Positions 6,978-51,183 of a stretch of DNA of 64,000 nucleotides are shown one piece after another. The position numbers were made by a program, and so were the translations under genes. The DNA is from Macrostomum lignano (Eukaryota): NCBI GenBank assembly GCA_002269645.1, contig NIVC01001159.1:423414-487413 (forward strand), read 5' to 3'. Within the stretch, counting starts at the first letter, position 1; every line of letters starts with the position of its first letter. The notes under the pieces were generated by a model. The model was not told where the DNA came from and made no database searches. It saw only the letters and a program-made list of their open reading frames with translations.

Positions 6978-7022
<45 letters not shown>

Positions 7023-10000: not shown

Positions 10001-13000
10001 GACCACCTGACTGCGTCATTGACCACCTGACTGCGTCATTGACCACCTGACTGCGTCATTAACCACCTGACTGCGTCATTGACCACATGACTGCCTCATT
10101 AATCACCTGACTGCGTCATTAACCACCTGACTGCGTCATTAACCACCTGACTACCTCATTAACCACCTGACTACCTCATTGAATTCTCACCTGCAGCAGA
10201 TTTTCATCGCACGGTGCCTGGGCCTCTTTAACAGCTTTAAGCCAGGCAATCTCATTGGTCAGAAGTTTCTCCGCGTTGCCCAGTTGACAGCCGCGCTCGT
10301 GATAATTCGATAGCAGCGTTTCCAATAGTAGAAAATATTCCAGACTCTGCCGCTCGTGCTGTTTCACCAAGTTATTAAGCTGAGTGAACAGCAAAGTGGT
10401 AAAGAATAGCAGAGGCCGGGTCTCCAGGGAGCAGCGGGTGGCAATGATGGCGAACTGTTCGCGAGCGCTGTCGCGAACCTCGGGCAGGGGACAAAGGATC
10501 AGAGCGTCGGTGATGAACAACTGCCAGTAGCGCTCCCGGCATAGCGACTCAACCGCGGACGAATTCACCTGCGGAGAGTAATTGGAATCGGTTGAATTAA
10601 ATATCCTTGCTGTGGTACTTATAGTAAACGAAATAGATTTTTGGAAATTTCAACATATCTGCTATTTCCGATATGTATCGAAAACTAATAAATGAAGTGA
10701 CATTTTTAATGAAAATTCTGAAAAAGATAATTAAAATGTTCAAAAAATCGTTTTTTACTGATGCTAGCCGATATGTATCGAAAGCTACTTGATAAAGCGC
10801 ATTTTTCAAAGTATGATATATATTAGTGAACAAATAGCTAGCCACTTACAGACAGGTACAGCGACAACAGCTCAAGACTGAGCACAGCCAATTCCCTATC
10901 GGGCAATGATTGCAAGCTGGCTAAATCCGGTTCCGATGCGGCCAGTCTCTCCATAGCCGCGTGCACCTCCTCGTAGGGCCTGTAGGCCAGCTCGACAGCG
11001 TGAGCGGCGCTAGCCCAAGCCAGCCTGGCAACCGCGGCCACAGCCTCTGTGGAGGCCAGAGCCGGCAGGTCCTGGCGCAGCAGGCGGGACTCGCACAGGC
11101 TTCGAACAGAGTCGCGAGCCACCCGGGAGCAGTGCTGTTTCAACAGGTAGTCGCGCAGATGATGCGGAGTGTGCTGGATGCTGCTGATGAGGACTCTGGC
11201 GCTGTCAGCCAGTTGACTGGGCAGCAGCTGAGGGTCGCCGCTCTGTTGAGCGTAGAGCAGGGCGAAGGCTACGCCAGTGAGCAGCAGTTTGGCCAGGCGG
11301 ACAAGCCACAGGTGGATGAGCTTTCGAGTTGGCAGGTCGGCCCTGGTCAGGTAGTCCGTGCTGGTGAACGCGGCTAGAATGACGCCAACACCGCCGCGTT
11401 CAACAAACTTCACAAGCAGCAGCTGGCTGTCCGGACAGACGGACTCGCTGGCCGGGAACAGCAGGCTGTACAGCACCTGGGCATTGTAAAGCAGCTCACT
11501 CGGGCCGGCTTTGTCAAACAGAGCGTCTCGGAGTTGACCGGGCGCTGCTGACGCGTCGGCTGTTGAATCTCCGCAGCAGAGCGAGCGGAGCAGCTGCACC
11601 TGGCGATGGTGCGGCGGCATGAGGTCCAGCAGGTCGCGTACACCCTGCCTGAGGCTGGGCAAGTCCAGCTCGGAGCCCAGGTCGGCCAGGCAGAATAGAA
11701 AATTGGCCAGGTCGGGGTGCAGCTCGCCGGACATGATGACGCCAGGCAGGCAGGCCTCTGAAGCGGCCGGGACAGCGTCCAGCAGCTGCTGCTGCTGCTG
11801 CAGGAGAGGCGGCTGCTGGCCAGGCAGATGCGGCTGCTGATGCTGCACCTGCGCCTGCTGCTGCTGCTGCCTCGGCGAGCCGCCATCAACGGAGCTGCCC
11901 GAGCTGCTATCGGGTGAGCTGGCCAGGTTGTTAGGTATCGGCTGGGCGGCGGCAGCTGGCAGCAGTTTGCCAGTGAGGATGGCCAGGTTGCCGATGCCCA
12001 GCTCAACCAGAAGGCGTCTGTCAGTCTCGGCGGGTTCCAGGCATTCGTTATTGAAGTAGAGCTCAAGGCGGCAGGGAAATGGCGCCGCCTGGTGGCTGGC
12101 GATCTCTCTGAGCACGCTGCGCCGGTAATAGCCCAGGGTCTCGTTGGAGTGGGCCCAGTACTCGTGATCGGCTTTGCTGAGCTGCTGCTGGCCTGCCAGT
12201 CTCGGGTGCTGCGAGTGCGGCGGCTGCGGCGACACGTACGTCTGGGGCTGGCCCGGCCCGCCCGCCTGCGGCAGTTCGGGGGGCAACCAGTCATTACCAA
12301 CTGACAGATTCTGCAACCAGTCATTACCAACTGACAGATTCTGCAACCAGTCATTACCAACTGACAGATTCTGCAACCAGTCATTACCAACTGACAGATA
12401 CTGCAACCAGTCATTACCAACTGACAGATTCTGCAACCAGTCATTACCAACTGACAGATACTGCAACCAGTCATTACCAACTGACAGATTCTGCAACCAG
12501 TCATTACCAACTGACAGATACTGCAACCAGTCATTACCAACTGACAGATTCTGCAACCAGTCATTACCAACTGACAGATACTGCAACCAGTCATTACCAA
12601 CTGACAGATTCTGCAACCAGTCATTACCAACTGACAGATACTGCAACCAGTCATTACCAACTGACAGATTCTGCAACCAGTCATTACCAACTGACAGATA
12701 CTGCAACCAGTCATTACCAACTGACAGATTCTACAACCAGTCATTACCAACTGACAGATTCTGCAACCAGTCATTACCCAGCATCATCAACTTTACAAGC
12801 AGAGCTCGGATGCAAACAGCCCAGCATTACCAACTCTACAAGCAGAGCTCAGATGCAAACAGCCCAGCATTACCAACTCTACAAGCAGAGCTCAGGTGCA
12901 AACAGCCCAGCATTACCAAAGCCCAGCCAGCCCTCACCTGTCCAGTCTGCAGCCGCAGTATGACTTTGAAGCTGTGGCCACGCCAGGCGTGCATCAGCCG

Positions 13001-31695: not shown

Positions 31696-34240
31696 TAAAT
31701 TAAAGGCTTCACCACATCAGAAACAAAACGAAATTATGTATAGTAAAATGCGTTTAAAAACCTTATTAAACTATTAGAATTATGTATTTTAACTTAATTT
31801 TCGCACTTTATTTCATTTAAAAGCCTGTCGAAGTATTTATTATTTTTTGTAGTTAAAAAATGTACTGCAGTTAATATTACGTTTAATTGTATAATTTCCT
31901 AAGAAACATTAGAAATTTTTCCATTTGAAATTCATTTGAATGATTGCTGAATGCTAGATATTTGTATGCATTTTTGCATTTCGCATTTAATCTTTTAAAT
32001 TATTTATTTTTTCTTCGGCTGCTAGGCCTAATTTTGTTTATGGATTGTGATCTTAGGTCTAGCCTGTCAATTTTTTTATATGATCCTTCATCCAATATTA
32101 TTTATAATTGTCTTTAAATTTGTCAAGCAAAAAATATTCAACATCAAAGCTACTATTTTTTGTTTTGTTTTTGATTAGTGACTATATCCATGGCCATGAT
32201 AGGTTACATATAATATTATAAACTATAATATATGTGACTGTGATTGGTTAAGGTTATCATAGACGATAGTTCTTTTTTGTTTTTTGTTTTGTTTTTTACA
32301 TTCCACTATGCTATCATTATACAAATAACCTTAAAACGAATTTGTATAATTGTATACTGATAGTTAAGATAGGCCTAGTATAGTGGAGCTTTGAAAAAAG
32401 AACATCATAATGAGTATTTTATTTAGCAAAACACAAGAAACAAAGTTAAAAATTAAACATAATAAGAAATTATATTATTACCAATATTAGGCTAAAAACT
32501 TATTCTCAATATGATTCTAAGTGCCAAGTCCCAAGATAAAAAATTGAGACAAGACAAGAAAAGCTGCAAGCATAAGTAATGAAAACATATACATTTTTTA
32601 CCTTTAACTATCTATGTTAGAATTTATGATCATTCTTAAATTTAAAGTTTTACTCTAGCTGCACTCACAAAACTATTATATGGTTTTCTTTAAAAATGAC
32701 CCCCTATTGGCCTACGCCATAAAATCTAATTTATGCCAAAAAACAAATTTCCTCATGATATATATATAAGACATTATTAAAAATATACCAATAGCTATGC
32801 CATATGCTAGCTCTATAGTGCAATTTTCTAGTAGATTGTTCCATATGCTGGATACTTTATGTCAACCATTTTTTCAAGTCTATTGTATACTAGAATTTTC
32901 TAGCATATATATAAGATTTAGGAGTAGGAAACTCTAGTAGGACTTCTAAAATAGCCATTAACCATTATAGGATAGGATACTTTATTTTCAAAACAGAATA
33001 ATAATAACAATAGTAATAAGATATTGGTATTTATTCTTTGAAATATTAGAGTAAAATATTATCTACAGATTAGAAATTCTATTTATAATTAAAGCTTCAT
33101 CCCTTTTAAATGTTTATTTTTAGAAAACAAAGAAAATGAATTTTGTAGCACATGTATGTTATATCTTTATAGTTTATGATAGCCTTAAATAGGATAGGTC
33201 CCAGCATAGCTAAGTATATGAATAGGCAGAATAGCTGGTTCTACTAAGTATAGAAGTCAAGCAAATATTCCTGAAATAAGAGATGGTGTAGTATGCCATA
33301 GCTGAAATATAAGCTATCTATGCATCCTGGCTAATTACCATACAAAGGGATTTGCTTTAGGGATATGCTAGTATATGCTAAATAGAGAAAATCACAATGT
33401 AAAAATATCTTTTGGGGGGTTCTAAGTATATTATAGAGTAGAGATGTTCCAAAAGTGTATTTTATATCTAAATCAAAATCAAAATGTACACTTGAAGATT
33501 CTAAAATTTGGGAAATTAAAATCAAAATCAAAATTTCAAAACACCTTTACTATAAAGGAAACAGGGATTCTAGGGATGCTATAAAGGGAACATATATTCT
33601 AGGGATACCATAAAAGGAACAGGGATACTAGCAGTGCTATAGAGGGAACAGGGATTTCAAGGGTTGATTTTAAGGGAATAGGGATTCTAGGAGTGCTATA
33701 GAGAACAGAGATTCCAAGGGTGCTATAGAGGGAACAGGGATTCCAGGATTCCAGTTGTCAATACAACCAGGACTGACACTGTAGCTGCAGATTTACGAAG
33801 GTCATTAACAGACAAAGTAATAACTCATCAGACCAACCCCAGTTTTCTATTTTGAGTTTATGGTTTATGAGTCTCTATAGACAGACTCCAACTTCAATGC
33901 TGGTTTCTTTATCTTTCTTAACGAAGTTATTCTGAATTTTGAAAGCTGCATAATTTTCAGACCCTGGATCTGGTAAGACGGCAAGAGATAAAAGTCACAG
34001 AACTAGTTCAAACTGGTTTGTAATGTCTAAAGCAAAGTATGGGAATAAACAAGCTTAACACCACTCTGTATTTACCGTAGCATTGACTGAAATAAAGGTC
34101 AGCCGGTCTTTGACCTCAGATCGCCAGAATTCTGGCCTTATCTTAGCTTATTTAGTAAGTCCACTTGCAGTGGGCGCCCCTTGTTACTTTTGTCATTTTA
34201 ACATTTAAAAGTTTCCAGAAGCACAGCTATAGTTAGAAAA

Positions 34241-34270
34241 AGCTTGTCAGCTGTTGAACAAAATGGCGGC
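34241..34270 (+). promoter_or_regulatory. TTGTCAG acceptor 12 nt upstream of the GPT-like ATG; the ATG lies within a YY1-type motif CAAAATGGCGGC
   Basis: Motifs seen directly; function inferred. Confidence 0.3.
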
Positions 34271-36332
34271 ATCAGTTGAGTCTGCCAGTTTGGCTGGCCA
34301 GAGTCAACAGGCAGATAAGGGCGAGTCAAAGCCGCTGACTTATCTGAGACAGGTCCTGGCCCTGATGCTGGACCCGGGCTTGCTGGCCAGGTCGGGCGCT
34401 GGTTGCTACCCGGCCGATGTTGTCGCTATGGCCAAACGCCTGCTAGCTGAGTTCCCCGGCGCCAGCCTGGGCTCCTACACGCACACTGGCGGCCAGTTCG
34501 CCGTCAGGCAGCTGTGCGCCGATTTTCTCGCTAGGCGCGACGGCGGCGCCAGCCAAGTCGATGACGTCATGGTGACCTGCGGCTCCGCCGAAGCCGTCCG
34601 CCTGCTACTCGAAGGCTTCGGTCGCAGACAATTGAAACCGGCGGCGGCGCTGATTCCGGCGCCAGGCCGGCCAATGTACGCCGCCTTCGCCCATCAGGTC
34701 GGCGTCCTGCCGGTACCGTACAGGCTGACCGCGCCACTGACTGCTGGCTGGCAGCTGGCCGAGACCGAGCTAGAGGCCGCCTATCGGGTCAGTCGTGTTC
34801 GTCCCTGTCACCGTCTGGCATCCCTGTGTAGTCCCTGTCACCTGGCATCCCTGTAGTCCCTGTCACCTGGCATCCCTGTGTAGTCCCTGTCACCTGGCAT
34901 CCCTGTAGTCCCTGTCACCTGGCATCCCTGTGTAGTCCCTGTCACCTGGCATCCCTGTAGTCGGTCACTCTTTCGCACCCGTGGAGCCCCTGGCGCCCCT
35001 GTCACCGTCTGTTACTAAGGGATCTCTGCGCCACTTTAAGGCTTTAACTACTCAGTAAGTAGTATTGTGTTGTACAAATCACTTCCGCATCCGTATTCGC
35101 TTTCAGTCGGCTGTGGAGGCAGGCGGTGAGCCGCGCATTCTGGTGCTGCTGAACCCCGGCCGCCCCACCGGCCAGCTGCTGACGGCTGCCTCCCTGCAGC
35201 TCGCCGCCGATTTTGCTCGCCGTCGCCGACTGTTTGTGATCTCCGACGAGACTCTGCAGTTCGCCCAGTTCGACAACGAGCAACAGTTCGTCAAATTTCG
35301 CCGATTGGTCCTTGAGCAGCAGGCGGCGCGGCCCGACCTGCCGCCGCTTGAAGTCGCCTCGGTGACCTCGCTTAGCGAAGGTACAAGCGATTAAGGTAGC
35401 GGACAGGCGGATGAGGGTAGCGGACAGGCAGATGAGGGTAGCGGACAGGCAGATGGGGGTAGCGGACAGGCAGATGAGGGTAGCGGACAGGCAGTTGAGG
35501 GTGATGGACAGGCAGATGAGAATAGCGGACAGGCGGATGAGGGTAGCGGACAGGCAGATGAGGGTAGCGGACAGGCAGATGGGGGTAGCGGACAGGCAGT
35601 TGAGGGTGATGGACAGGCAGATGAGAATAGCGGACAGGCGGATGAGGGTAGCGGACAGGCAGTTGAGGGTGATGGACAGGCAGATGAGAATAGCGGACAG
35701 GCGGATGAGGGTAGCGGACAGGCAGTTGAGGGTGATGGACAGGCAGATGAGGGTAGCGGACAGGCGGCTTAGAACTTGAAACCTGCGCGCCACCGTCAGG
35801 TCTGTGCGGTGGCGGCGATCCCGGACTTCGCGCTGGTTTCTGCGAGCTGCTAAATTTGCACCCGACTGCCAAGGCGGCGCTGCTGGCTGTGCTGTCCTGC
35901 ACCTCCTGTCCGCCTGTGCTCGGCCAGGCCGCCCTAGCCATGTCCGTGTCGGCCCCGCCCGGTCCGGACAGTCCGTCGCACGCTGGCTTTGTTGTCGAGT
36001 TGGCAGCCGCCGCTGGTTCGCTTCGACGAAAAGCCGCCCTGACTGGGCGCGCCCTGCTCGAATCTGGCGCGGCAATTTTGGCGCCGATGCCCAGCGCAGG
36101 CGGTCGAATCTGCCCGATGATGGCCGGACCGCCAGCTGGCTGGCTGAGAAGTGTCTCCGCCGCCGAGCCTGCCGATGCCGCCTATTGCCGGGCTGCTCTG
36201 CAAGTTGTTGCCGATAAAGACTGCCACAACTGGCTGCTTCCCGGGAGCCACTTTGGCCTCGAGCCGCGCCTTGCGGACGGAGGCTTCTTTGTTAGGTTTG
36301 CGATTTTATCTGCGTGCCAGCGATGCCAATGA
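34263..36332 (+). CDS. GPT: Alanine aminotransferase (GPT/ALT, class I PLP fold) homologue, probably catalytically inactive; exons 34263-34787, 35107-35380, 35800-36332 (possible extra last exon 36696-36741)
   Basis: KPLTYLRQVLAL, SLGSYT, ARRDGG, LLNPGRPTGQ, ISDE, GLRAGFCELLN, CPPVLGQ, PGSHFG and VRFAIL are collinear with ALT. Junctions CGG|GTCAGT..TTTCAG (phase 0) and GAAG|GTACAA..GTCAG (phase 1). Confidence 0.85.
34800..34960. repeat. 25/27-bp minisatellite GTCCCTGTCACCTGGCATCCCTGT(GT)A, GPT-like intron 1
   Basis: Direct inspection. Confidence 0.9.
35395..35768. repeat. 21-bp minisatellite GAGGGTAGCGGACAGGCAGAT, GPT-like intron 2
   Basis: Direct inspection. Confidence 0.95.
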
Positions 36333-36356
36333 CGGCCATGAGTAGCTGAAGAGACT

Positions 36357-36685
36357 GGGTAGCGGAGTAGAGGGCGGAGGGGGTAGCGGAGTAGAGGGCG
36401 GGGAGAGGGTAGCGGAGTAGAGGGCGGAGAGGATAGCAGAGTAGAGGGCGGAGAGGGTAGCGGAGTAGAGGGCGGAGGGGTAGCGGAGTAGAGGGCGGAG
36501 GGGGTAGCGGAGTAGAGGGCGGAGGGGTAGCGGAGTAGAGGGCGGAGAGGGTAGCGGAGTAGAGGGCGGAGAGGGTAGCGGAGTAGAGGGCGGAGAGGAT
36601 AGCACAGTAGAGGGCGGAGGGGGTAGCGGAGGAGAGGGCGGAGGGGGTAGCGGAGTAGAAGGCGGATGGGGTAGCGTCGGGGTAG
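36357..36685. repeat. 23/24-bp minisatellite GGGTAGCGGAGTAGAGGGCGGAG at the 3' end of the GPT-like gene
   Basis: Direct inspection. Confidence 0.95.
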
Positions 36686-36929
36686 TTGGCCACAGCATCT
36701 TGAAAGACTTTTTGAAGGGTTTTAAAGGCCAATGGTCGTGAATGCTAATCCTGTGCTAATCCGTGCCACCCCAACAACCGCCTGCAGCATCAGCATCAAA
36801 TGCTCGGAACGAGTTCTACTCGAACGATTGAATCGTCTGATTGCCTTTCATCGGAGCTTGCTGGAACGATACGCAGAATAAATTACTTTTACATAGTAGC
36901 ATCGTGTGATTTTTTGCTTCAAAATTCGT

Positions 36930-37321
36930 GTTTTGTCAGCCTAACTGAGAGTGGGGCCATCCAAAGTGAGAATCCTGCCTACGCTGACTGCGAAGGGCCT
37001 GGCTGCGTCCAGCCTAGTCTATGAGCCATATGAGTCTAGGATTTTAACTCTTTACTTTACTGTACTGTATCATCCAGTGTGTTCCTGTTTCCGTTATTCC
37101 GTTCAAGCTATTGGCTAGTCATATGGCTCAGAAGGTATAAAAATAAAGGAATACGACGCATAGACCAATCGATTCTCACATTGGATGGCTTTTTATCACT
37201 TTGCTTGTCCTTTATTGTCTATGGCCCATAGACTAAGGCTGCACGCAGCCGGGCCCTTCGCAGTCAGTGTAGGCGGGATTCTCACTTTGGATGGCTTTAT
37301 TCTCAGTTAGGCTGACAAAAC
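36930..37321. mobile_element. About 390-bp MITE-like element with about 95-bp TIRs, between the GPT-like and TRMT10C genes
   Basis: GTTTTGTCAGCCTAACTGAGA..GCCATCCAAAGTGAGAATCC.GCCTAC.CTGACTGCGAAGGGCC is mirrored at 37225-37321. No clear TSD. Confidence 0.7.
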
Positions 37322-37524
37322 TAATACTTATAAGCACTATGTTAGTGCATTTTTACATAAATAAATCGCATATAGCTGATTATAAGTTTACACACGCTCT
37401 TGCTGACTTCCTTGCTTATCTTACCACTGTCTTACTAATTCCAAGTTTCATAATGTGAAGACGTTAAACTGATGTTCAAGTCAGTTCTGTTAATCATTTT
37501 AAAGTTGCTTAAAGCGACCCTTAT

Positions 37525-37790
37525 CACTTGAATCAGCGCCCCTTAGCACCTGAATCAGCACTCCATAGCACCTGAATCAGCACTCCATAGCACCTGAATC
37601 AGCACTCCATAGCACCTGAATCAGCGCCCCTTAGCACCTGAATCAGCGCCCCTTATCACCTGAATCAGCGCCCCTTAGCACCTGAATCAGCGACCCTTAT
37701 CACCTGAATCAGCGACCCTTATCACCTGAATCAGCGACCCTCAGCACCTGAATCAGCGACCCTCAGCACCTGAATCAGCATTCCCTAGCA
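37525..37790. repeat. 22-bp minisatellite CACCTGAATCAGCGCCCCTTAG upstream of TRMT10C
   Basis: Direct inspection. Confidence 0.95.
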
Positions 37791-37908
37791 CCAAACTCGG
37801 CGACCCATATCAAAGGATTTGCCCTGGATAGAAAGATTAAATTGCTTTTTCCTACTCTAAATCTGATCAAGGAGAAACAAAAATTCAGTTACATATTTTC
37901 AGTTTCAG

Positions 37909-39088
37909 CGCTTGTCAGCAAAGGCGCCACTACTCGGGCGGCAGTGGAACTGTTGTTGTCAAGTCTGGCGCCGTCAGTGGCAGAGCAGCCGGGACAAAGC
38001 CAACGCCAATGCCCGGCTGCGGATGCTGCGAATTCTGTCGCCGCTGCTCGACTGCGTCTGCCCCGCCGCCCTGGACATGAGCCGGCCGGAGGCGGAGCGC
38101 CGACAGGCATTGATTAGCAGCGTGCTGGCAATACAGGTGAAATTTAAAGTCAGAATTCATTGTTTATTTAAGGTCAGGGTTTGGGGTTTATTAGAGGTCA
38201 GGGTTCGGGGTTTATTTAAGGTTAGGATTCAGTATTTATTTAAGGTCGGGTTTCAGGGTTCATTTAAGGTCAGGTTTCAAGGTTCATTTAAGGTTAGGAT
38301 TCAGCGTTTATTTAAGGTCAGGTTTCAGGGTTTATTTAAGATCAGGTTTCAGGGTTCATTTAAGGTCAGGTTTCAAGGTTTATTTAAGGTCAGGTTTCAG
38401 GGTTTATTTAAGGTCAGATTTCAGGGTTTATTAAGGTCAGGTTTCAGGGTTCATTTAAGGTCACGTTTCAAGGTTCATATAAGGTCCCGTTTCAGGATTT
38501 AGAGTTCAGGATTCAGAAGGTCAGGATTCAGAGTTCAAGTCAAGGTCAGGATTCAGGTCAAGGTCAGGGTTCAGGTCAAGGTCAGGATTCAGAGTTCAGG
38601 TCAAGGTCAGGATTCAGGGTTCAGTAAGGTCAGGGTTCAGGTCAAGGTCAAGATTCAATTCCAGCAGAGCTCGTGTCCGCAAAGTTCGTGATAAAACGCT
38701 ATCACTTCGCAGGCGCAGGCCATGATCTGCAACTCGCCGCCGCTGCAAGAGGTCGCCCCCGATCTCAACCGGTTCGACGAGGACGCCTGGCACGAGGCGC
38801 TATCGGCTACGGACTGTCTGGAGCTGCTGAACAATCTGCGATCGATTCGCCGGAGCCACGACGAGGACGACGCCGATGCGGCGGTCGGCGAAGAGGCCGA
38901 GTCGCCCAGCTTGGAGACCCCCAAGGACTGGCAGGAGCGCCCGCCGCTGCTGTTGGACGCAACCTGGGAGGAGCAGCTCAGCTATGCGGATGTCTTCAGC
39001 GTGAGTAGCATGAGTCTGTCTGCCTGTCTGTCTGTCTGTCTGCCTGTCTGTCTGTCTGCCTGCCTGTCTGTCTGTCTGTCTGCCTGTG

Positions 39089-39161
<73 letters not shown>

Positions 39162-39228
39162 GCGTGTCTGTCTGTCTGCCTGCCTGTCTGTCTGCCTGTC
39201 TTTCTGTCTGTCTGTTTGTCTGTCTGCC

Positions 39229-39269
<41 letters not shown>

Positions 39270-39284
39270 GCCTGTCTGTCTGCC

Positions 39285-39317
<33 letters not shown>

Positions 39318-39368
39318 GCCTGTCTGTCTGTCTGCCTGCCTGTCTGCCTGTCTGTCTGTCTGTCTGCC

Positions 39369-39405
<37 letters not shown>

Positions 39406-40026
39406 GGCTGCCTGTCTGTCTGACTTCTTTCCTTCCACTTGCCAGCACTCCCAGAAGCATCTGCCAATCAGTTATCGAGTCTTCCCGGCCATCCTCACCA
39501 CCCCCGCTCCCAGGTCGGCACGCAGCTCCGCCGCCTCCTCCGCTGCAACCGCCGGCACGGCCTGCCGTTCCTCCCGACCCTCTGCGGCCTGTCGCCTCAC
39601 GGCCGACTCCAGCGCCGTCTCGACGGTGCGCTGCAGTCGCCGCCGCCGCCAGCCACAGAATTTGTTCGAACATCGCGTCCTTGGCGCGAGATGGCCCCGC
39701 CTGGCCGCGCTCTGATTTTCATCTCCCCGGACGCGATGAAGCTACTGACCTGCTGGAGGCCCGACGCTGTCTACGTGCTGCCCTGCGCTGTCAATCGGAC
39801 CAGCGGTCTGAACCGGACCTTGGCCCGCCAGGCCGTCCGCTCCGGCGCCCTCTGCGTTCGCCTGCCGCTTGACGCCTTGCCCAAAACGGTGCGGCCCGAC
39901 CTGGAGGTCCTCGCCAGAGTTCTGCTAGCCATGCGCATCTCCCATGGTGCGCAGCAGGATTGGCGAATCATCTTGAACCGGCTGACAACCAGGCGTGACC
40001 CAAACTTCGATGCCGGCTTGGTCTGA
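37909..40026 (+). CDS. TRMT10C: TRM10-family SPOUT tRNA m1R9 methyltransferase, most like mitochondrial TRMT10C/MRPP1; exons 37909-38136, 38713-39000, 39514-40026; no ATG at the 5' end
   Basis: PPLLLDATWE, GTQLRRLLRCNRRHGLPF..LCGL, LIFISPDA, VYVL..V and VRLPLD match TRM10 motifs in order. Phase-0 GT-AG introns (CAG|GTGAAA, AGC|GTGAGT). Arg-rich, acid-poor N-terminus. Paralogue assignment (C rather than A/B) is inferred. Confidence 0.7.
38160..38650. repeat. 24-bp (TTTATTTAAGGTCAGGTTTCAGGG) then about 18-bp (GGTCAAGGTCAGGATTCA) arrays, TRMT10C intron 1
   Basis: Direct inspection. Confidence 0.9.
39012..39421. repeat. (CTGT)n microsatellite, TRMT10C intron 2
   Basis: Direct inspection. Confidence 0.95.
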
Positions 40027-40059
40027 GTGCTCTTTATGCACTGCTGCGCCCATTGCCCA

Positions 40060-40415
40060 GTGTGCACCCAGCCTCTCCCCGCCACCACCCCAGCCCAATG
40101 TACACTCAGCCTCTCCCCACCTCCACCGCAGCCCAGTGTACACTCAGCCTCTCCCCACCTCCACCCCAGCCCAGTGTACACTCAGCCTCTCCCCACCTCC
40201 ACCGCAGCCCAGTGTACACTCAGCCTCTCCCCGCCGCCACCACCCCAGCCCAGTGTACACTCAGCCTCTCCCCGCCACCACCCCAGCCCAGTGTACACTC
40301 AACCTCTCCCCGCCACCACCCCAGCCCAGTGTACACTCAACCTCTCCCCGCCGCCACCACCCCAGCCCAGTGTACACTCAACCTCTCCCAGCCACCAACC
40401 CCAGCCCAGTGTACA
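40060..40415. repeat. About 38-bp minisatellite CCCAGCCCAGTGTACACTCAGCCTCTCCCCGCCACCAC just after the TRMT10C stop
   Basis: Direct inspection. Confidence 0.95.
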
Positions 40416-40759
40416 CCATCCCAGTCTAATCTATCTAATACAGCATTTTTATTATTAAAGAATCGCGTTCTATTCGGGATTTGTGTACTTTTCATCAACA
40501 AGTGAAGTGTTCGCCTTTGGTTTGACTGATTAACTGTTGAAAATAAATGGCGCTATTTTCATTTGCGAATGCTAGTTTTAGAGTGCATAATTTTTAACAT
40601 ATTTGAAAAATTTTTGCCTTTTTTACATAATTTTACTTGTATTTAGATTATCTTTTAGCTTAATAAAATGCTAGAAAATGTTTATGCATTTCCGATATTG
40701 ATCAAAAATACTGTAACTTTACTGGGCTAGAATTATTTTCCGATTAGAAATATAATGAA

Positions 40760-43700
40760 TCTACTAGTACGTCCCTCCGATATGTATCGAATGTATAAAA
40801 AGTCTACTAGTACGTCCCTCCGATATGTATCGAATGTATAAAAAATCTACTAGTATTTCCCTCCGATATGTATCGAATGTATAAAAAATCTACTAGTACG
40901 TCCCTCCGATATGTATCGAAAGTATAAAAAATCTACAAGTATTTCCTTCCGATATGTATCGAAAGTATAAAAAATCTACTAGTATTTCCCTTCGATATGT
41001 ATCGAAAGTATAAAAAATCTACTAGTATTTCCCTCCGATATGTATCGAATGTATAAAAAATCTACTAGTATTTCCCTCCGATATGTATCGAATGTATAAA
41101 AAATCTACTAGTACGTCCCTCCGATATGTATCGAATGTATAAAAAATCTACTAGTATTTCCCTCCGATATGTATCGAATGTATAAAAAATCTACTAGTAT
41201 TTCCCTCCGATATGTATCGAATGTATAAAAAATCTACTAGTATTTCCCTCCGATATGTATCGAAAGTATAAAAAATCTACTAGTACGTCCCTCCGATATG
41301 TATCGAAAGTATAAAAAATCTACTAGTATTTCCCTCCGATATGTATCGAATGTATAAAAAATCTACTAGTACGTCCCTCCGATATGTATCGAAAGTGTAA
41401 AAAATCTACTAGTATTTCCCTCCGATATGTATCGAATGTATAAAAAATCTACTAGTATTTCCCTCCGATATGTATCGAATGTATAAAAAATCTAGTTTTT
41501 CCCTCCGATATGTATCGAATGTATAAAAAATCTACTAGTACGTCCCTCCGATATGTATCGAAAGTATAAAAAATCTACTAGTATTTCCCTCCGATATGTA
41601 TCGAAAGTATAAAAAATCTACTAGTATTTCCCTCTGATATGTATCGAATGTATAAAAAATCTACTAGTACGTCCCTCCGATATGTATCGAAAGTATAAAA
41701 AATCTACTAGTATTTCCCTCCGATATGTATCAAATGTATAAAAAATCTACTAGTATTTCCCTCCGATATGTATCGAATGTATAAAAAATCTACTAGTATT
41801 TCCCTCCGATATGTATCGAAAGTATAAAAAATCTACTAGTACGTCCCTCCGATATGTATCGAATGTATAAAAAATCTACTAGTATTTCCCTCCGATATGT
41901 ATCGAATGTATAAAAAGTCTACTAGTACGTCCCTCCGATATGTATCGAATGTATAAAAAATCTACTAGTATTTCCCTCCGATATGTATCGAATGTATAAA
42001 AAATCTACTAGTATTTCCCTCCGATATGTATCGAAAGTATAAAAAATCTACTAGTACGTCCCTCCGATATGTATCGAAAGTATAAAAAGTCTACTAGTAC
42101 GTCCCTCCGATATGTATCGAAAGTATAAAAAATCTACTAGTATTTCCCTCCGATATGTATCGAAAGTATAAAAAATCTACTAGTATTTCCCTCCGATATG
42201 TATCGAATGTATAAAAAATCTACTAGTATTTCCCTCCGATATGTATCTAATGTATAAAAAATCTACTAGTATTTCCCTCCGATATGTATCGAATGTATAA
42301 AAAATCTACTAGTATTTCTCTCCGATATGTATCGAATGTATAAAAAATCTACTAGTATTTCTCTCCGATATGTATCGAATGTATAAAAAATCTACTAGTA
42401 TTTCCCTCCGATATGTATCGAATGTATAAAAAATCTACTAGTATTTCCCTCCGATATGTATCGAATGTATAAAAAATCTACTAGTATTTCCCTCCGATAT
42501 GTATCGAATGTATAAAAAATCTACTAGTACGTCCCTTCGATATGTATCGAAAGTATAAAAAATCTACTAGTATTTCCCTCCGATATGTATCGAAAGTATA
42601 AAAAATCTACTAGTATTTCCCTCCGATATGTATCGAAAGTATAAAAAATCTACTAGTATTTCCCTCCGATATGTATCGAATGTATAAAAAATCTACTAGT
42701 ATTTCCCTCCGATATGTATCGAAAGTATAAAAAATCTACTAGTATTTCCCTCCGATATGTATCGAATGTATAAAAAATCTAGTTTTTCCCTCTGATATGT
42801 ATCGAATGTATAAAAAATCTACTAGTACGTCCCTCCGATATGTCTCGAAAGTATAAAAAATCTACTAGTACGTCCCTCCGATATGTATCGAATGTATAAA
42901 AAATCTACTAGTATTTCCCTCCGATATGTATCGAAAGTCTAAAAAATCTACTAGTACTTCTTTTCCGATATGTATCGAAAGTATAAAAAATCTACTAGTA
43001 TTTCCCTCCGATATGTATCGAATGTATAAAAAAATCTACTAGTACGTCCCTCCGATATGTATCGAAAGTATAAAAAGTCTACTAGTACGTCCCTCCGATA
43101 TGTATCGAATGTATAAAAAATCTACTAGTATTTCCCTCCGATATGTATCGAATGTATAAAAAATCTACTAGTATTTCCCTCCGATATGTATCGAATGTAT
43201 AAAAAATCTACTAGTACGTCCCTCCGATATGTATCGAAAGTATAAAAAATCTACTAGTACGTCCCTCCGATATGTATCGAATGTATAAAAAATCTACTAG
43301 TATTTCCCTCCGATATGTATCGAATGTATAAAAAATCTACTAGTACGTCCCTCCGATATGTATCGAAAGTATAAAAAGTCTACTAGTACGTCCCTCCGAT
43401 ATGTATCGAATGTATAAAAAATCTACTAGTATTTCCCTCCGATATGTATCGAATGTATAAAAAATCTACTAGTATTTCCCTCCGATATGTATCGAATGTA
43501 TAAAAAGTCTACTAGTATTTCCCTCCGATATGTATCGAAAGTATAAAAAATCTACTAGTACTTCCCTCCGATATGTATCGAAAGTATAAAAAATCTACTA
43601 GTACGTCCCTCCGATATGTATCGAATGTATAAAAAGTCTACTAGTACGTCCCTCCGATATGTATCGAATGTATAAAAAATCTACTAGTACGTCCCTCCGA

Positions 43701-44637
43701 TATGTCTCGAAAGTATAAAAAATCTACTAGTACGTCCCTCCGATATGTATCGAATGTATAAAAAATCTACTAGTATTTCCCTCCGATATGTATCGAAAGT
43801 CTAAAAAATCTACTAGTACTTCTTTTCCGATATGTATCGAAAGTATAAAAAATCTACTAGTATTTCCCTCCGATATGTATCGAAAGTATAAAAAATCTAC
43901 TAGTATTTCCCTCCGATATGTATCGAAAGTATAAAAAATCTACTAGTATTTCCCTTCGATATGTATCGAATGTATAAAAAATCTACTAGTACGTCCCTCC
44001 GATATGTATCGAAAGTATAAAAAATCTACTAGTACGTCCCTCCGATATGTATCGAATGTATAAAAAGTCTACTAGTACGTCCCTCCGATATGTATCGAAT
44101 GTATAAAAAATCTACTAGTATTTCCCTCCGATATGTATCGAAAGTCTAAAAAATCTACTAGTACTTCTTTTCCGATATGTATCGAATGTATAAAAAATCT
44201 ACTAGTATTTCCCTCCGATATGTATCGAATGTATAAAAAGTCTACTAGTACGTCCCTCCGATATGTATCGAATGTATAAAAAATCTACTAGTATTTCCCT
44301 CCGATATGTATCGAATGTATAAAAAATCTACTAGTACGTCCCTCCGATATGTATCGAATGTATAAAAAATCTACTAGTATTTCCCTCCGATATGTATCGA
44401 ATGTATAAAAAATCTGCTAGTATTTCCCTCCGATATGTATCGAAAGTATAAAAAATCTACTAGTACGTCCCTCTGATATGTATCGAAAGTATAAAAAATC
44501 TACTAGTATTTCCCTCCGATATGTATCGAATGTATAAAAAGTCTACTAGTATTTCCCTCCGATATGTATCGAAAGTATAAAAAATCTACTAGTACTTCCC
44601 TCCGATATGTATCGAAAGTATAAAAAATCTACTAGTA
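40760..44637. repeat. 3.9-kb homogeneous satellite, 43-bp unit CCCTCCGATATGTATCGAATGTATAAAAAATCTACTAGTATTT, about 90 copies
   Basis: Period measured between 40773 and 40816; ends 30 bp before the TMEM242 acceptor. Confidence 0.97.
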
Positions 44638-44667
44638 ATTCGCTTTCTCTCGCAATTCGAACTTCAG

Positions 44668-45081
44668 TCGGACCCGCTTGACAACGACGAGCGCCGGCCG
44701 GGAGTTGCGCCCGCCCTGCTGCTCGTCGGCACGGCGCTCACCTCAGCCGGCGCCGGTTTCGGCGCCACGGTCGCTTTGTCCCGGCGCAGGGAAGCCGCCG
44801 CTAGCGGCAGCGCCGGTGCCAGCCTTCGACACGGCGCCGACGGTACTCGCCTGGCGCTGCGCGCCCTCGGCTGGGGCAGCGCCGCCGCATTTGTTGGCGT
44901 CTCGGTCGTCACTGCCGCCTCCCTTGCCCTGGCTGGAGTTCGCAGCCTCACCGATCTGCGCGTTCCAGCGTCGCCCGCTTCGCCGAGCGGCGGTCGACGG
45001 GACTTCAAAACTGTTCGAGAGCTGGTGGACTTCCTGCTGAGCGAGGATGCCAGGATGGGCGGACTCGGGACAGATAGCTGA
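44668..45081 (+). CDS. TMEM242: TMEM242 (DUF1358) mitochondrial membrane protein; single coding block starting at a 3' splice site, with no upstream in-frame ATG
   Basis: LALRALGWGS motif as in TMEM242, preceded by the hydrophobic segment ALLLVGTALTSAGAGFGATVALSRRR and followed by a second TM segment. Acceptor CTTCAG at 44662-44667. 137 codons plus stop. Confidence 0.85.
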   Translation, partial: SDPLDNDERRPGVAPALLLVGTALTSAGAGFGATVALSRRREAAASGSAGASLRHGADGTRLALRALGWGSAAAFVGVSVVTAASLALAGVRSLTDLRVPASPASPSGGRRDFKTVRELVDFLLSEDARMGGLGTDS

Positions 45082-45109
45082 ATCACTGCCACATCTGCGA
45101 CTTTGGGTG

Positions 45110-45930
45110 CTTCACATGTGTGTGTTTCACCTGTGTGTGTTTCACCTGTGTGTGTTTCACCTGTGTGTGTTTCACCTGTGTGTGTTTCACCTGTGTGTGT
45201 GTTTCACCTGTGTGTGTTTCACATGTGTGTTTCACCTGTGTGTGTTTCACCTGTGTGTGCTTCACCTGTGTGTGTTTCACCTGTGTGCGTTTCACCTGTG
45301 TGTGTTTCACCTGTGTGTGTTTCACCTGTGTGTGTTTCACCTGTGTGTGTTTCACATGTGTGTGTTTCACCTGTGTGTGTTTCACCTGTGTGTGTTTCAC
45401 CTGTGTGTGTTTCACCTGTGTGTGTTTCACCTGTGTGTGTTTCACCTGTGTGTGTTTCACCTGTGTGTGTTTCACATGTGTGTTTCACCTGTGTGTGTTT
45501 CACCTGTGTGTGCTTCACCTGTGTGTGTTTCACATGTGTGTGTTTCACCTGTGTGTGTTTCACCTGTGTGTGTTTCACCTGTGTGTGTTTCACCTGTGTG
45601 TGTTTTACCTGTGTGTGTTTCACCTGTGTGTGTTTCACCTGTATGTGTTTCACATGTGTGTGTTTCACCTGTGTGTGTTTCACCTGTGTGTGTTTCACCT
45701 GTGTGTGTTTTACCTGTGTGTGTTTCACCTGTGTGTGTTTTACCTGTGTGTGTTTTACCTGTGTGTGTTTCACCTGTGTGTGTTTCACATGTGTGTGTTT
45801 CACCTGTGTGTGTTTCACCTGTGTGTGTTTTACCTGTGTGTGTTTCACCTGTGTGTGTTTTACCTGTGTGTGTTTCACCTGTGTGTGTTTCACCTGTGTG
45901 TGTTTCACCTGTATGTTTCACCTGTATGTT
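45110..45930. repeat. 15-bp minisatellite TGTGTGTGTTTCACC just after the TMEM242 stop
   Basis: Direct inspection. Confidence 0.95.
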
Positions 45931-46035
45931 TAACAGTCTTTTCAGCTGTCCCTTCATGCCTGTTTGTTTGTTATACTGTTTTACTGTCATTCAGGCTTTT
46001 ATAAACCAGCTTGCATAAAGATTATTTTCGTGTAA

Positions 46036-46226
46036 AATAAAACAATGAATACTGAATATTGAAGCAGCATTTATTATCACACAAAATATGTACGAAGTGG
46101 CACATTTTTATTGTTTCTGGGAGTTTCAATTAATTTGTTATACTTTTTAAAAGAATTCAATGATCTGAATAAAATAGCTTCTACGGACTACTTGCAGTAG
46201 ATAATGCGAATATCGTGCTGTTTCAG
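46036..46226 (+). promoter_or_regulatory. Candidate intercistronic module: AATAAA (46036, 46168) followed by a TGTTTCAG acceptor (46225-46226) 17 nt before the SDR ATG
   Basis: The motifs are seen directly; their role as poly(A) signal plus trans-splice site is inferred. Confidence 0.4.
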
Positions 46227-46243
46227 TTCCAAACGTTTCGAAA

Positions 46244-49200
46244 ATGCTCGCAATCTTAACTGAAGTGGTCTGCCTGCTCTGCCAGATTGTGGCTGACATC
46301 GCCAAGAGCGCCTACAACAATTTCACCCCAGCCTCCTGGCGCAGCAAAAACATCTCCGGCCAGACAGCCGTGGTTACTGGCGCTGGTAAGCGGCGGGTTT
46401 TACAAAGGAGTTACAAAGTGATTTTCTCGTACTTTTCAATCTGACTAACTGCCTACTCATAGTAGCTCCTTTCAATTTAGCCTGTGCCGGCTTTAAAATT
46501 AAGCGGCTATACTTAAAAGTTTATTGTTATTGTTCTAATCTACCGGTATTTTCTTTCAGATATGTATCGAAAGTAAAATATATCTACAATAAAGTATTTC
46601 CTGCCGATATGTATCGAGAGTATAATAAATCTACTAGTGTTTTCTTCCGATATGTAAATTTTGTAATTTTATATGTAAATTTTTACATGTAAATTTCAAA
46701 ACGGATATTCCAACTCGCAAAAGACCATAGCATCTGAGTTCACTACTCTGTCAGCTGGTCGATTTTTTATGTAACTATCAGTTTGTAATATTTTTGCATA
46801 TCGTTATATTGCTACTCTTAAGTAGGCGATTAAATATCACACATAAAACACAACATCTCTGGAACCGTCATCAGCCAGCGGCCTCGGCCGTCTGCTGGCC
46901 ATCCGGCTGTCCGGCCTCGGCTGCCGCCTCGTCCTCATCGACATCTCGACCGGCGTTGACGACGTGGCCGCCGAGTGCCGCTCGGCCGGCTCGCCAAAAG
47001 TGCAGGCGTACCAATGCGACCTGAGCTCGCGCGAGGTCATCTACGCCACCTGCGAGCGCCTGCTTGCCGACTTCGGCCAGCGCGTCGACATTCTCGTCAA
47101 CAACGCCGGCGTCGTCACTGGCCGGCCGTTTCTGGACTGTCCGGACGCCATGATTCGGCGAACCATGGCGGTGAACATCGAGGCTCATTTCTGGCTTTGC
47201 AAAGCTCTGCTGCCCGGCATGATCGAGCGGAACTGCGGCCACGTTGTCACCGTGGCCTCGGGCGCCGGCCAGGTGAGACCAGCATTGCTCAGCCCCCCCC
47301 CGATCCTTCAGTGACTGCAACCGCCACCTCAGCCCCCCCCTGATCCTTCAGTGGCTGCCACCGCCACCTCAGCCCCCCCCCTGATCCTTCAGTGGCTGCC
47401 ACCGCCACCTCAGCCCCCCCCCCTGATCCTTCAGTGACTGCCACTGCCACCTCAGCCCCCCCCCCGATCCTTCAGTGGCTGCCACCGCCACTTCAGCCCC
47501 CCCCCTGATCCTTCAGTAGCTGCCACCGCCACCTCATCCCCTCTGATCCTTCAGTAGCTGCCACCGCCACCTCAGCCCCCCCCCTGATCCTTCAGTGGCT
47601 GCTACCGCCACCTCAGCCCCCCCCCTGATCCTTCAGTAGCTGCCACCGCCACCTCATCCCCCCTGATCCTTCAGTAGCTGCCACCGCCACCTCAGCCCCC
47701 TCCCCCTGATCCTTCAGTGGCTGCCACCGCCACCTCAGCCCCCCCCCGATCTTTCAGTGGCTGCCACTGCCACCTCAGCCCCCCCCTGATCCTTCAGTGG
47801 CTGCCACTGCCACCTCAGCCCCCCCCCTGATCCTTCAGTGGCTGCCACCGCCACCTCAGCCCCCCATCCTTCAGTGGCCACCCCGATCCCTCAGTCCCTG
47901 ACCAGCGCTGACCAATGCTCGCCAACCATGCTCACTCCACAGCTCGGGGTGCCCAGCCTCTCTGACTACTGTGCCAGCAAGTTCGCCGCGGTTGGCTTCG
48001 ACGAATCATTGAAATTCGAGCTGGCCTCCCGCGGCAACGGCGGGGTGCGCACCACCTGCGTGTGCCCCTACTACATTAACACCGGCATGTTCGATGGCGT
48101 GGTCAGCCGCTTCCCCCGGCTGCTGCCCGTGATGAATCCCGACTATGTGATTGACAAGATGGTGCAAGCAATCCTCACCAACCAGGAGCTACTGGTGCTG
48201 CCGCGGCTGCTCTATTATACCAATATCATTCACAAGTGAGTCCAGGGTCTGCTTAGATCACAGTGGGCTCTCTGATTGTATCGTCTGGATGGGAAACCTC
48301 CCAGATCCTCAGTTGCTGGGCCAGCCTCCCAGATCCTCAGTTGCTGGGCCAGCCTCCCAGATCCTCAGTTGCTGGGCCAGCCTCCCAGATCCTCAGTTGC
48401 TGGTCGAGCCTCCCAGATCCTCAGTTTCTGGGCCAGCCTTCCAGATCCTCAGTTGCTGGGCCAGCCTCCCAGATCCTCAGTTGCTGGGCCAGCCTCCCAG
48501 ATCCTCAGTTGCTGGGCCAGGCACCCAGAGTGTCAGTTGCTGGGTCAGCCTTCCAGATCCTCAGTTGCTGGTCGAGCCTCCCAGATCCTCAGTTGCTGGG
48601 CCAGCCTCTCAGATCCTCAGTTGCTAGGCCAGCCTCCCAGAGCCTCAGTTGCTGGGCCAGCCTCCCAGATCCTCAGTTTCTGGGCCAGCCTTCCAGATCC
48701 TCAGTTGCTGGGCCAGCCTCCCAGAGTGTCAGTTGCTGGGCCAGCCTCCCAGAGTGTCAGTTGCTGGGTCAGCCTTCCAGATCCTCAGTTGCTGGTCGAG
48801 CCTCCCAGATCCTCAGTTGCTGGGCCAGCCTCTCAGATCCTCAGTTGCTAGGCCAGCCTCCCAGAGTGTCAGTTTCTGGGCCAGCCTCCCAGATCCTCAG
48901 TTTCTGGGCCAGCCTTCCAGATCCTCAGTTGCTGGGCCAGCCTCCCAGATCCTCAGTTGCTGGGCCAGCCTTCCAGATCCTCAGTTGCTAGGCCAGCCTC
49001 CCAGAGTGTCAGTTGCTGGGCCAGCCTCCCAGATCCTCAGTTGCTGAGACGCCACCTACCGATGCCCCAGCTCGTCGGCCTCAAGTAGAGTTGTAGTCGT
49101 CGCAGTTATTTAGCTTTCAGAGGGCTTTAGGCCCTGCTGCGAACCAATGCTCGGAGGCAGGCAATCCTGCCCATATCGCTGACTCCAGAGCAGGCACTCA

Positions 49201-49374
49201 TACAGAGTGCACAGCTGACTGTCGCACCGCCTGGCACCGCAAATTCCGCTGCCGCCCCCTTTCAGGATGGTGCCAGTTAGCGTCTCTTACAAGCTGCTGA
49301 ACTTCTTCGGCGTCTTCGACTCCATGGCCGGATTCCGCGGTCGCCAAGGCGGCGCCGACGCCAAGAAAGATTAA
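46244..49374 (+). CDS. SDR16C5: Short-chain dehydrogenase/reductase of the SDR16C type (retinol dehydrogenase / 17beta-HSD11-like), 313 aa; exons 46244-46385, 46875-47272, 47943-48235, 49266-49374
   Basis: VVTGAASGLG Rossmann motif across intron 1, ILVNNAGV, HVVTVAS, catalytic YCASK, CPYYINTGMF and an N-terminal hydrophobic anchor. Exon phases 1/0/2 are consistent; 942 nt in total. The symbol is a family-level assignment. Confidence 0.88.
47285..47880. repeat. About 40-bp minisatellite [43 protein letters not shown] intron 2
   Basis: Direct inspection. Confidence 0.95.
48290..49047. repeat. 28-bp minisatellite CCTCCCAGATCCTCAGTTGCTGGGCCAG, SDR intron 3
   Basis: Direct inspection. Confidence 0.95.
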
Positions 49375-51183
49375 TATCAATTTGGGTAATCACGGATGAC
49401 GCTTTAAAGAGCAGATGCTGCGGTCTGACTTTTATGCTAGCCCAGTGATTTTTTCAATGATTTTTTTCAACTGATTTCACACTGAATCAAACTTATTGAA
49501 AAACTAGGGACAGCAGGTGACTCAACTGCTTGCTAGCATGTTGTATGGCTGTATTTCTGTTGCATATTATGCACTCGCTATTTGGCTTTTTTTCAGTTCG
49601 AGGCTCGTGCGATTTTAGCTCTAGTTAAAATTCTAAATTTATAACTATAATTCTTGTTTCTTTATTAAGAGTATTGCAGAGTTTGTGTTGTTGTTTTTAG
49701 TAGAAATAGAAAATAAAATTGCTTCATAAATACTGCCGATTTAGTGTGATTTTCTACACTTAGAAACACTTTAACGCTTAATCAAAATATTTGTGTTAGT
49801 TTTTTTGCATGACATTGTTTTCAAATACAATTCTTACGCAGCAGTATATGTTGAGACGGAAAAACTAAGAGTACATGTAGATGTGTTTATTGTTTATGTG
49901 GCCTGTCGAGAATCCCCAACTCAGGAGGGCTGTTGTTGATTTTGGATCTAGCTCATTATTGTTCTCAAAACTAGAGACGGGTCATCTGGTGGCAGAGCTT
50001 AGATGAAGAAGCGTTAGCCTGATCAAATTGGGCTATCGTTTACATGTACGTTTTTGCTTTTTAGTTTCCCAAATTTGTTGTATATTTTTAGTATATAGGA
50101 TATAATCTACATACATGCATATATTTCAGCATTGCATAGGCATACAGTATGTTAAAGCATTTTAGGTTGTAACTTGTCAGGCAATAATAATGCTACTTGT
50201 TATTTAATTGCTAATAAAAACAACTTCACTTAAACTAAACTAACCATTATTCGATTAAACTTCAAACGTATAGTAGCAAATCTAGCAAACCCCGATGATT
50301 TCACGAGACTGAACCGATAAAGATGATAAGATATTTTTTGTCGGTTTTAGGCAAATTTTACACATATATGACGCTTCAAAATAGTAAAACAAGCATTAGA
50401 GCAATTTATTACTTATAATAATTTTAATTTTAATTTGTCAATATAACAATACAAAACTAAAGTATTTAGTAACATATAACATTACTTGATAATTTTTTTT
50501 CAGGTTTCATAACCTGGATTTTAAGTATATTTTCTGCGATGAATATCAGAAAATGTGGAACAAACTCAGCAAGCACCCGGACACTTTAATTTTGAAACAA
50601 GAAGACAGAGTTTTCATTTTTTGGTAAATTTTAATCGATTAAGCGATGGCTCTATCTTGAGAAAAATCTACTTGTATTCGCTGTTTTTTGTGCAATATAT
50701 TTCCTGACTCTTAAATTGGCAACCCTAAAATTAAATCCAGGATGCAAATTTGCATTCCTTATATTTTAAAAAATATAGTATTGATGTGCGTTAAAGTAAA
50801 ACATGTAGGCCCTATCTTTTTATTAAGTTTCAATCTAGATCTAGCGCCTTTCTTCCATTGCAGATCTATGTATGAGTATGACTAGGGTCTATGGCTAGGG
50901 TCTGGCTTCTATTCTAGCCATTTGATCCAAACAACTAATTGATAAGAAAGAAAATGCAAATGTAATATGAATTTTATATTTTATAAACTGTTAGCAGTGT
51001 TATCTTTACTTAAGAATTCACAACCTTGAATTATATTTTGGGATACACTTCTGCAATTTATATAAAGAAAGCCTTAAAAAGGCTTTATAAAATTTATAAG
51101 CCTAAGGCTAGGCCTATGCTTCTTTTGAAAAAGACTATGAATAAAATGCCTTTGATAGGAAAATTCTCGTATATATATATAGG

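Follow-up and report, generated by a model that had tools for sequence, protein, structure and literature searches.

A TMEM242 exon of Macrostomum lignano without a start codon of its own, and its probable supply of an AUG by the spliced leader

Results

The TMEM242 locus

Within the 64,000 nucleotides analyzed here (the whole stretch is referred to as the window), we found a cluster of four genes, all of them on the plus strand, in which TMEM242 (DUF1358) is present as a single coding exon (Table 1). An aminotransferase with its own ATG (position 2132 of L001, the related locus described below) lies two genes upstream of TMEM242, and a short-chain dehydrogenase (adh_short) follows downstream. 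The gene directly upstream of TMEM242 has a weak TRM10-like Pfam match. The C-terminal 114 residues of this gene (L001 8420-8767) gave no protein match in a word-indexed search, though the gene is called on the NCBI contig. Elsewhere in the window, a large ubiquitin carboxyl-terminal hydrolase gene of the USP type is encoded on the minus strand.

Three consecutive genes of the cluster hold or adjoin six tandem arrays, which occupy introns, 3' UTRs, and spacers. One of these arrays is the 43-bp satellite upstream of TMEM242, which a sequence-only reading of this DNA had already described. Copy number differs between the window and L001 in the arrays that were compared; the 43-mer, for example, is present in about 90 copies in the window versus about 7 in L001. 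Units related to the 43-bp repeat (...CCGATATGTATCGA.AGTATAA.AAATCTACTAGT...) were also seen in intron 1 of adh_short (46555-46660; L001 11340-11656), and the repeat family is therefore dispersed rather than confined to the TMEM242 spacer.

Table 1. Features of the TMEM242 locus and other parts of the window. A slash marks a splice site.
Feature	Position	Strand	Details
Ubiquitin carboxyl-terminal hydrolase gene, USP type	4760-13000	−	Several long ORFs; Pfam UCH, UCH_UBL1, DUF3517
Upstream gene, weak TRM10-like Pfam match	37909-40026	+	Exon 1 after tttcag/ (37908); stop 40024-40026
24-mer tandem array	38142-38658		
(GTCT)n array	39014-39422		102 copies
38-bp satellite	40055-40416		Between the upstream stop and the unique spacer
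Unique spacer, 334 nt	40417-40750	+	Between the 38-bp and 43-bp satellites; ATTAAA 40454, AATAAA 40542-40547
Candidate cis exon	40547-40582	+	ATGGCGCTATTTTCATTTGCGAATGCTAGTTTTAGA/GTGCAT; peptide MALFSFANASFR, 12 codons; donor AGA/GTGCAT
43-bp satellite	40751-44641	+	90.5 copies, 94% match; fills most of the putative outron or intercistronic spacer
Acceptor region	44641-44667	+	Pyrimidine rich, ~26-27 nt unique, ending in CTTCAG/; predicted SL trans-splice acceptor, phase 0
TMEM242 (DUF1358), single coding exon	44668-45081	+	137 codons plus TGA (45079-45081)
TMEM242 3' UTR and short spacer to next acceptor	45082-46226	+	15-bp satellite; AATAAA 46036 and 46168
15-bp satellite	45107-45929		55 copies, in the TMEM242 3' UTR; ~20 copies in L001
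Short-chain dehydrogenase (adh_short), exon 1	46227-46388	+	Own ATG 46244, 17 nt after the acceptor
41-mer tandem array	47288-47865		

The TMEM242 exon

The first codon of the TMEM242 exon, TCG, stands in phase 0 straight after the acceptor CTTCAG/ (AG at 44666-44667), whose sequence context is cgctttctctcgcaattcgaacttcag. Reading upstream in the frame of the exon, we encountered an in-frame TAG at 44590-44592, 26 codons 5' of the exon, and no in-frame ATG between that stop and the exon. The first and only in-frame ATG within the exon is codon 130 of 137 (45055-45057). The TMEM242 exon is without a usable start codon of its own. The sequence-only reading had claimed an intact ORF in phase 0 after the acceptor at 44667, an upstream stop at 44590, and a first ATG at codon 130; all of these positions were borne out when the sequence was read again.

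The identity of the ORF is clear from its match to Pfam PF07096 (DUF1358, equivalent to TMEM242), which scored 49.7 bits (E = 4.2e-13) against a gathering cutoff of 23.4 and placed protein residues 7-99 on positions 13-106 of the 115-position profile. A profile search returned numerous mollusc and arthropod proteins that bear the name "transmembrane protein 242." Identity between the window protein and the named homologues is only about 30 to 40%. The G-T-R-L-A-L-R-A-L-G-W-G block, which holds the LALRALGWG core, is invariant in our alignment, and the acidic/basic C-terminal tail ELVDFLLSED is common to the homologues. TMEM242 is a small mitochondrial membrane protein. The window's own copy has no protein entry in the public collection, and a metagenome scan with the TMEM242 family alignment gave no match.

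The spliced leader and the acceptor

The single published spliced leader (SL) of M. lignano, CGGTCTCTTACTGCGAAGACTCAATTTATTGCATG, ends in ATG, its 3' end reading ...ATTTATTGCATG (PMC8629364, PMC5173321, PMC10468722). This terminal ATG is probably a translation start codon, and the leader is conserved in M. cliftonense and M. hystrix (PMC10468722). Roughly 30 to 39% of M. lignano genes are trans-spliced (PMC8629364, PMC5730564), with [T/C]TNCAG as the top motif at trans acceptors and GT[G/A]AG at cis donors, although about a third of the cis donor regions analyzed do not fit the latter (PMC8629364). The TMEM242 acceptor, CTTCAG, fits the trans-acceptor motif. Citing Cheng et al. 2006 (J Biol Chem 281:733), PMC9851317 and PMC12582326 state that every reported flatworm SL ends in ATG and that the SL AUG is established as an initiator in Schistosoma mansoni; PMC9851317 further cites the SL AUG as being in frame in 28% of trans-spliced S. 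mansoni mRNAs and as required by more than 40 cDNAs. The statement of the sequence-only reading that the flatworm leader ends in AUG holds for M. lignano, and its statement that this AUG can initiate agrees with the S. mansoni work as cited.

When we joined the SL to the TMEM242 exon in silico, the only ATG of the leader was in frame and opened a protein of 138 aa, MSDPLDNDERRPG..., as the sequence-only reading had calculated. Homologues range from 125 to 190 aa. The predicted protein has 14 residues before its first helix, compared with 5 to 50, usually 20 to 40, among 48 representative homologues. By the rules of initiator Met removal, the N-terminal peptide of such a protein is more likely (Ac-)SDPLDNDER than MSDPLDNDER.

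Searching the 64-kb window with the 3' 16 nt of the SL, at up to 2 mismatches, we found no SL RNA gene, as expected if the SL is made elsewhere in the genome. Homology searches of protein and contig collections returned no SL-extended or transcript-derived TMEM242 protein.

A paralogous copy under selection

The best database match of the window ORF was P0001, at 89% identity (BOX15_Mlig033698g3, "hypothetical protein, partial," from Macrostomum lignano), which is encoded on NIVC01002077.1 at the locus that we call L001. Positions 2-16032 of L001 are collinear with positions 32380-51024 of the window at roughly 82 to 93% nucleotide identity. Judging by this alignment, the window is either a duplicated or homeologous copy of the L001 locus in M. 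lignano, which is known as a hidden polyploid (PMC10468722), or a copy from a very closely related species. Neither Mlig033698 nor TMEM242 is listed in the supplements searched from PMC5730564, PMC5816591, PMC7336406, and PMC5173321.

The two copies share the architecture described above. The 70 nt compared directly upstream of the exon are identical, including the acceptor (AG at 9981-9982 in L001), with the acceptor region of Table 1 corresponding to L001 9956-9982. An in-frame TAG likewise lies 26 codons upstream in L001, and its TMEM242 exon has no in-frame ATG anywhere, because a 1-nt indel alters the last 8 residues. This indel lies 8 codons before the stop (45040-45081 versus L001 10364-10402) and gives tails of ...DARMGGLGTDS in the window and ...DARAGRTGDR in L001.

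Nine substitutions, three of them non-synonymous and six synonymous, separate the two copies within the first ~124 codons, together with an in-frame 9-nt indel that adds EAS to a loop of the protein in L001. Identity between the copies is 97.6% in the exon, compared with 92 to 95% in the adjoining unique non-coding DNA. The excess of synonymous changes, the in-frame indel, and the higher identity of exon than flank show that the ORF is no product of chance and that both TMEM242 copies are under purifying selection as coding sequence, though neither is self-starting. We also considered a pseudogene or decaying copy, which was rejected on the substitution pattern between the window and L001.

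In the RNA-seq-based annotation, the CDS of Mlig033698g3 consists of one exon, is 5' partial, and has no further coding exon upstream. The start of this CDS does not coincide with the acceptor but lies 18 nt into the exon; the annotation therefore does not mark the exact 5' end or SL site. The deposited CDS starts of three consecutive genes on L001 (5819, 10001, and 11050) are all non-ATG and lie −6, +18, and +8 nt, respectively, from consensus acceptors. Annotated 5' ends on this contig approximate splice sites without coinciding with them, and the resolution of the boundary-calling pipeline may be the cause.

Distant relatives

A search of 5.8 billion proteins gave just two further close relatives, P0002 (Logan assembly, DRR639838) and P0003 (TARA metagenome, SAMEA6034818). 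Each has about 48% amino acid identity to the window protein and is encoded on a short genomic contig (L002 and L003, respectively). On both contigs, a T-rich tract and TTGCAG/ directly precede the Ser codon TCT, which is the counterpart of Ser-1 of the window exon in the alignment. In L003, an in-frame stop lies 15 codons upstream, there is no ATG in the 163 nt upstream, and the "M" of the P0003 database entry is a GTG picked by a prokaryotic gene caller. L002 does have an in-frame ATG, 33 codons upstream; it lies in DNA of 35 to 40% GC, versus 67 to 71% in the exon, and the ...SSFFPSCLQ with which the N terminus of P0002 ends is a translation of the acceptor. That both contigs begin the exon as TTGCAG/TCT with no ATG indicates that the ATG-less, phase-0 architecture of the TMEM242 exon is older than M. 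lignano.

A rival explanation is that translation does not depend on an SL AUG. An untrimmed mRNA could be read from a near-cognate start codon, or the copy could be untranslated or decaying. The codons ATA, ATC, and ATT do occur in this frame downstream of the TAG at 44590 and before the exon, and the C-terminal 8 residues differ between the copies through the 1-nt indel. However, the near-cognate codons belong to satellite DNA, the distant relatives conserve both the acceptor and the phase-0 Ser codon, and the pattern of substitutions, indel, and identity between the window and L001 is that of a translated and selected gene in both copies. We therefore regard this explanation as very improbable.

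A candidate cis-spliced 5' exon

The sequence-only reading had named one competing model, in which a small cis-spliced exon, at 40547-40582 or another like it, supplies the ATG and the 43-bp satellite becomes a 4.1-kb intron. The exon exists as that reading described it, joins the TMEM242 exon in phase 0, and is intact in ORF and donor in both copies (35 of 36 nt identical). The longer N-terminal tails of most TMEM242 homologues would leave room for a small upstream coding exon, and M. lignano introns average about 1.1 kb (PMC5730564), with repeat-rich introns present in the TMEM242 locus itself.

Several properties of this candidate speak against it. Only 3 of its 12 codons have G or C at the third position, versus 102 of 137 in the TMEM242 exon (binomial P of ~5e-4). 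Its ATG shares its A with the AATAAA of the unique spacer. Conservation is just as high in the preceding 130 nt as in the candidate exon, a pattern like that of a 3' UTR end, with no exon-specific conservation, and the sole difference within it between the window and L001 is non-synonymous. Its donor, called weak in the sequence-only reading, does depart from GT[G/A]AG and matches 2 of 6 consensus positions, although with about a third of M. lignano cis donors off this motif, the motif alone is weak ground against a donor at 40583. The RNA-seq-guided annotation of Mlig033698g3 includes no cis exon, whereas an exon with an in-frame ATG would have made that CDS complete, and L003 lacks any ATG over the 163 nt that precede its acceptor.

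We looked for other exons of this kind as well. There is no GT[G/A]AG donor between the upstream stop and the TMEM242 acceptor in either copy. A scan of the 4.6 kb upstream for exons running from an ATG to a GT in phase 0 gave 294 candidates, nearly all of them in the satellite; none matched more than 3 of 6 consensus positions and none had GT[G/A]AG. Taken together, we find a cis-spliced source of the ATG, at 40547-40582 or in another small exon, unlikely.

The operon-like setting

The unique spacer that contains the candidate cis exon is 94.9% identical to L001 9326-9641, and with its ATTAAA and AATAAA signals it is probably the 3' end of the upstream gene. The AATAAA at 40542 (L001 9449) and the acceptor at 44667 are 4120 nt apart, of which the 3891-nt satellite takes up all but about 230 nt; the corresponding remainder in L001 is about 210 nt (a poly(A) site at this signal is assumed in these distances). 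In M. lignano, operons have been defined by a repeat-adjusted distance of less than 1 kb, and repeats inflate operon spacers (PMC8629364). TMEM242 and the gene upstream of it lie on the same strand and within this repeat-adjusted distance. At the other end of TMEM242, the AATAAA at 46168 is about 50 nt from the next acceptor, tgctgtttcag/ (AG at 46225-46226), an operon-like arrangement.

Gene names of the form MligNNNNNN.gK in the Mlig_3_7 annotation denote the Kth gene cut from a transcriptional unit by means of SL and poly(A) signals (PMC5730564). The "g3" of Mlig033698g3 fits TMEM242 as the third gene of the cluster, and by this numbering it would belong to the same unit. As the aminotransferase has its own ATG, the numbering g1, g2, and g3 fits.

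In exon 1 of the TRM10-like gene (37896-38140; L001 5810-6055), an open stretch of 39 codons, MRLSAKAPLLGRQW...RLRMLRIL, precedes the first internal ATG, and the SL AUG would share its frame. This stretch differs from L001 by two synonymous changes and one non-synonymous change, and the annotated CDS of the gene has a non-ATG start 6 nt before the acceptor. The TRM10-like gene may likewise be a user of the SL AUG. If adh_short is trans-spliced (46216-46260), the SL AUG would be out of frame there and would open an 11-codon upstream ORF, MFQTFRKCSQS followed by a stop, that overlaps the real start.

A same-strand neighbor upstream also raises the possibility that the TMEM242 acceptor mostly serves cis-splicing with a donor in the TRM10-like gene, through read-through or chimeric splicing that would make TMEM242 part of a fusion or start it from that gene's start codon. 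In parasitic flatworms, many acceptors are common to cis- and trans-splicing (PMC12582326), and the TRM10-like gene and TMEM242 are probably co-transcribed. Against this, the annotation keeps the two as separate genes, the TRM10-like gene ends in a stop, a 3' UTR, and poly(A) signals of its own ahead of the spacer, and TMEM242 is a stand-alone protein of about 140 to 190 aa in all named homologues. We give such cis use of the acceptor hardly any weight.

Discussion

Taken together, an SL that ends in AUG, an acceptor in phase 0 that fits the trans-splicing motif, a selected paralogue without an ATG, and a 5'-partial annotation support a model in which the SL donates the start codon of TMEM242. 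We consider it likely that the gene receives its AUG in this manner, probably within an operon-like cluster. The sequence-only reading had stated that translation of this gene requires trans-splicing. The sequence and the published leader agree with that statement, and we hold the requirement itself to be well supported by inference rather than demonstrated.

In the mechanism that we infer, which involves trans-splicing at the acceptor at 44667, initiation at the leader AUG, and transcription of the cluster as one unit, the TMEM242 pre-mRNA would be transcribed as the third cistron of the same-strand cluster (aminotransferase, TRM10-like gene, TMEM242, and short-chain dehydrogenase) or, alternatively, from a separate promoter within the spacer. 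The outron of this pre-mRNA would be made mostly of the 43-bp satellite. The spliceosome would join the 35-nt SL (...AUUUAUUGCAUG) to the acceptor CUUCAG/, and the last three bases of the leader would become codon 1, in frame with UCG GAC CCG.... The product would be a two-helix membrane protein of 138 aa beginning MSDPLDNDERRPG. Such splicing predicts the junction string ATTTATTGCATG+TCGGACCCGCTTGAC for the window copy and TCGGACCCGCTTGGC for the paralogue. Splicing from the candidate cis exon predicts GCTAGTTTTAGA+TCGGACCCGC, and the corresponding unspliced form is GAACTTCAG+TCGGACCCGC.

With regard to the origin of this arrangement, we tentatively propose, at somewhat below even chances, that the start codon was lost in an ancestor common to M. 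lignano and the two marine relatives. TMEM242 would have depended on the SL AUG ever since, with the acceptor-Ser2 junction long under selection and, in M. lignano, with splicing across a transcribed satellite of 3.9 kb and 90 copies. If this is true, the TMEM242 locus would be a natural test case for the limits of operon spacer expansion.

If start codon donation to TMEM242 is confirmed, translation of a conserved housekeeping gene would be wholly dependent on trans-splicing in a genetically tractable flatworm. It would bear on the design of M. lignano transgenes and on the understanding of what the conserved SL AUG does. There is a consequence for annotation too, since genes that use an SL AUG are now deposited as "partial" or missed altogether. 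To our knowledge, TMEM242 is not among the reported SL-AUG cases. AUG donation by the SL is already known in flatworms (Cheng et al. 2006), and this locus is a clean example of it rather than a new mechanism.

Compared with the SL-AUG mRNAs of S. mansoni, the TMEM242 locus is alike in having an SL that ends in AUG, an acceptor in phase 0 directly before codon 2, and a recipient exon in which no AUG precedes the conserved domain. It differs in that M. lignano is a free-living macrostomid and in that the case made here is genomic and comparative, whereas that of S. mansoni has cDNAs and translation assays. With the published operons of M. lignano (Wudarski 2017, PMC5730564; Ustyantsev and Berezikov 2021, PMC8629364), it shares the acceptor motif, the same-strand cluster, and the repeat-inflated spacing. 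The raw spacer here is 4.1 kb with 90 satellite copies, in contrast to a typical mode of 100 bp, and AUG donation is not discussed in those papers. Finally, relative to TMEM242 (DUF1358) of other animals, the M. lignano protein has a shorter N-terminal tail and is encoded by a single coding exon without a start codon, but it shares with them a domain match above the cutoff, the LALRALGWG core, a similar length, and its C-terminal tail.
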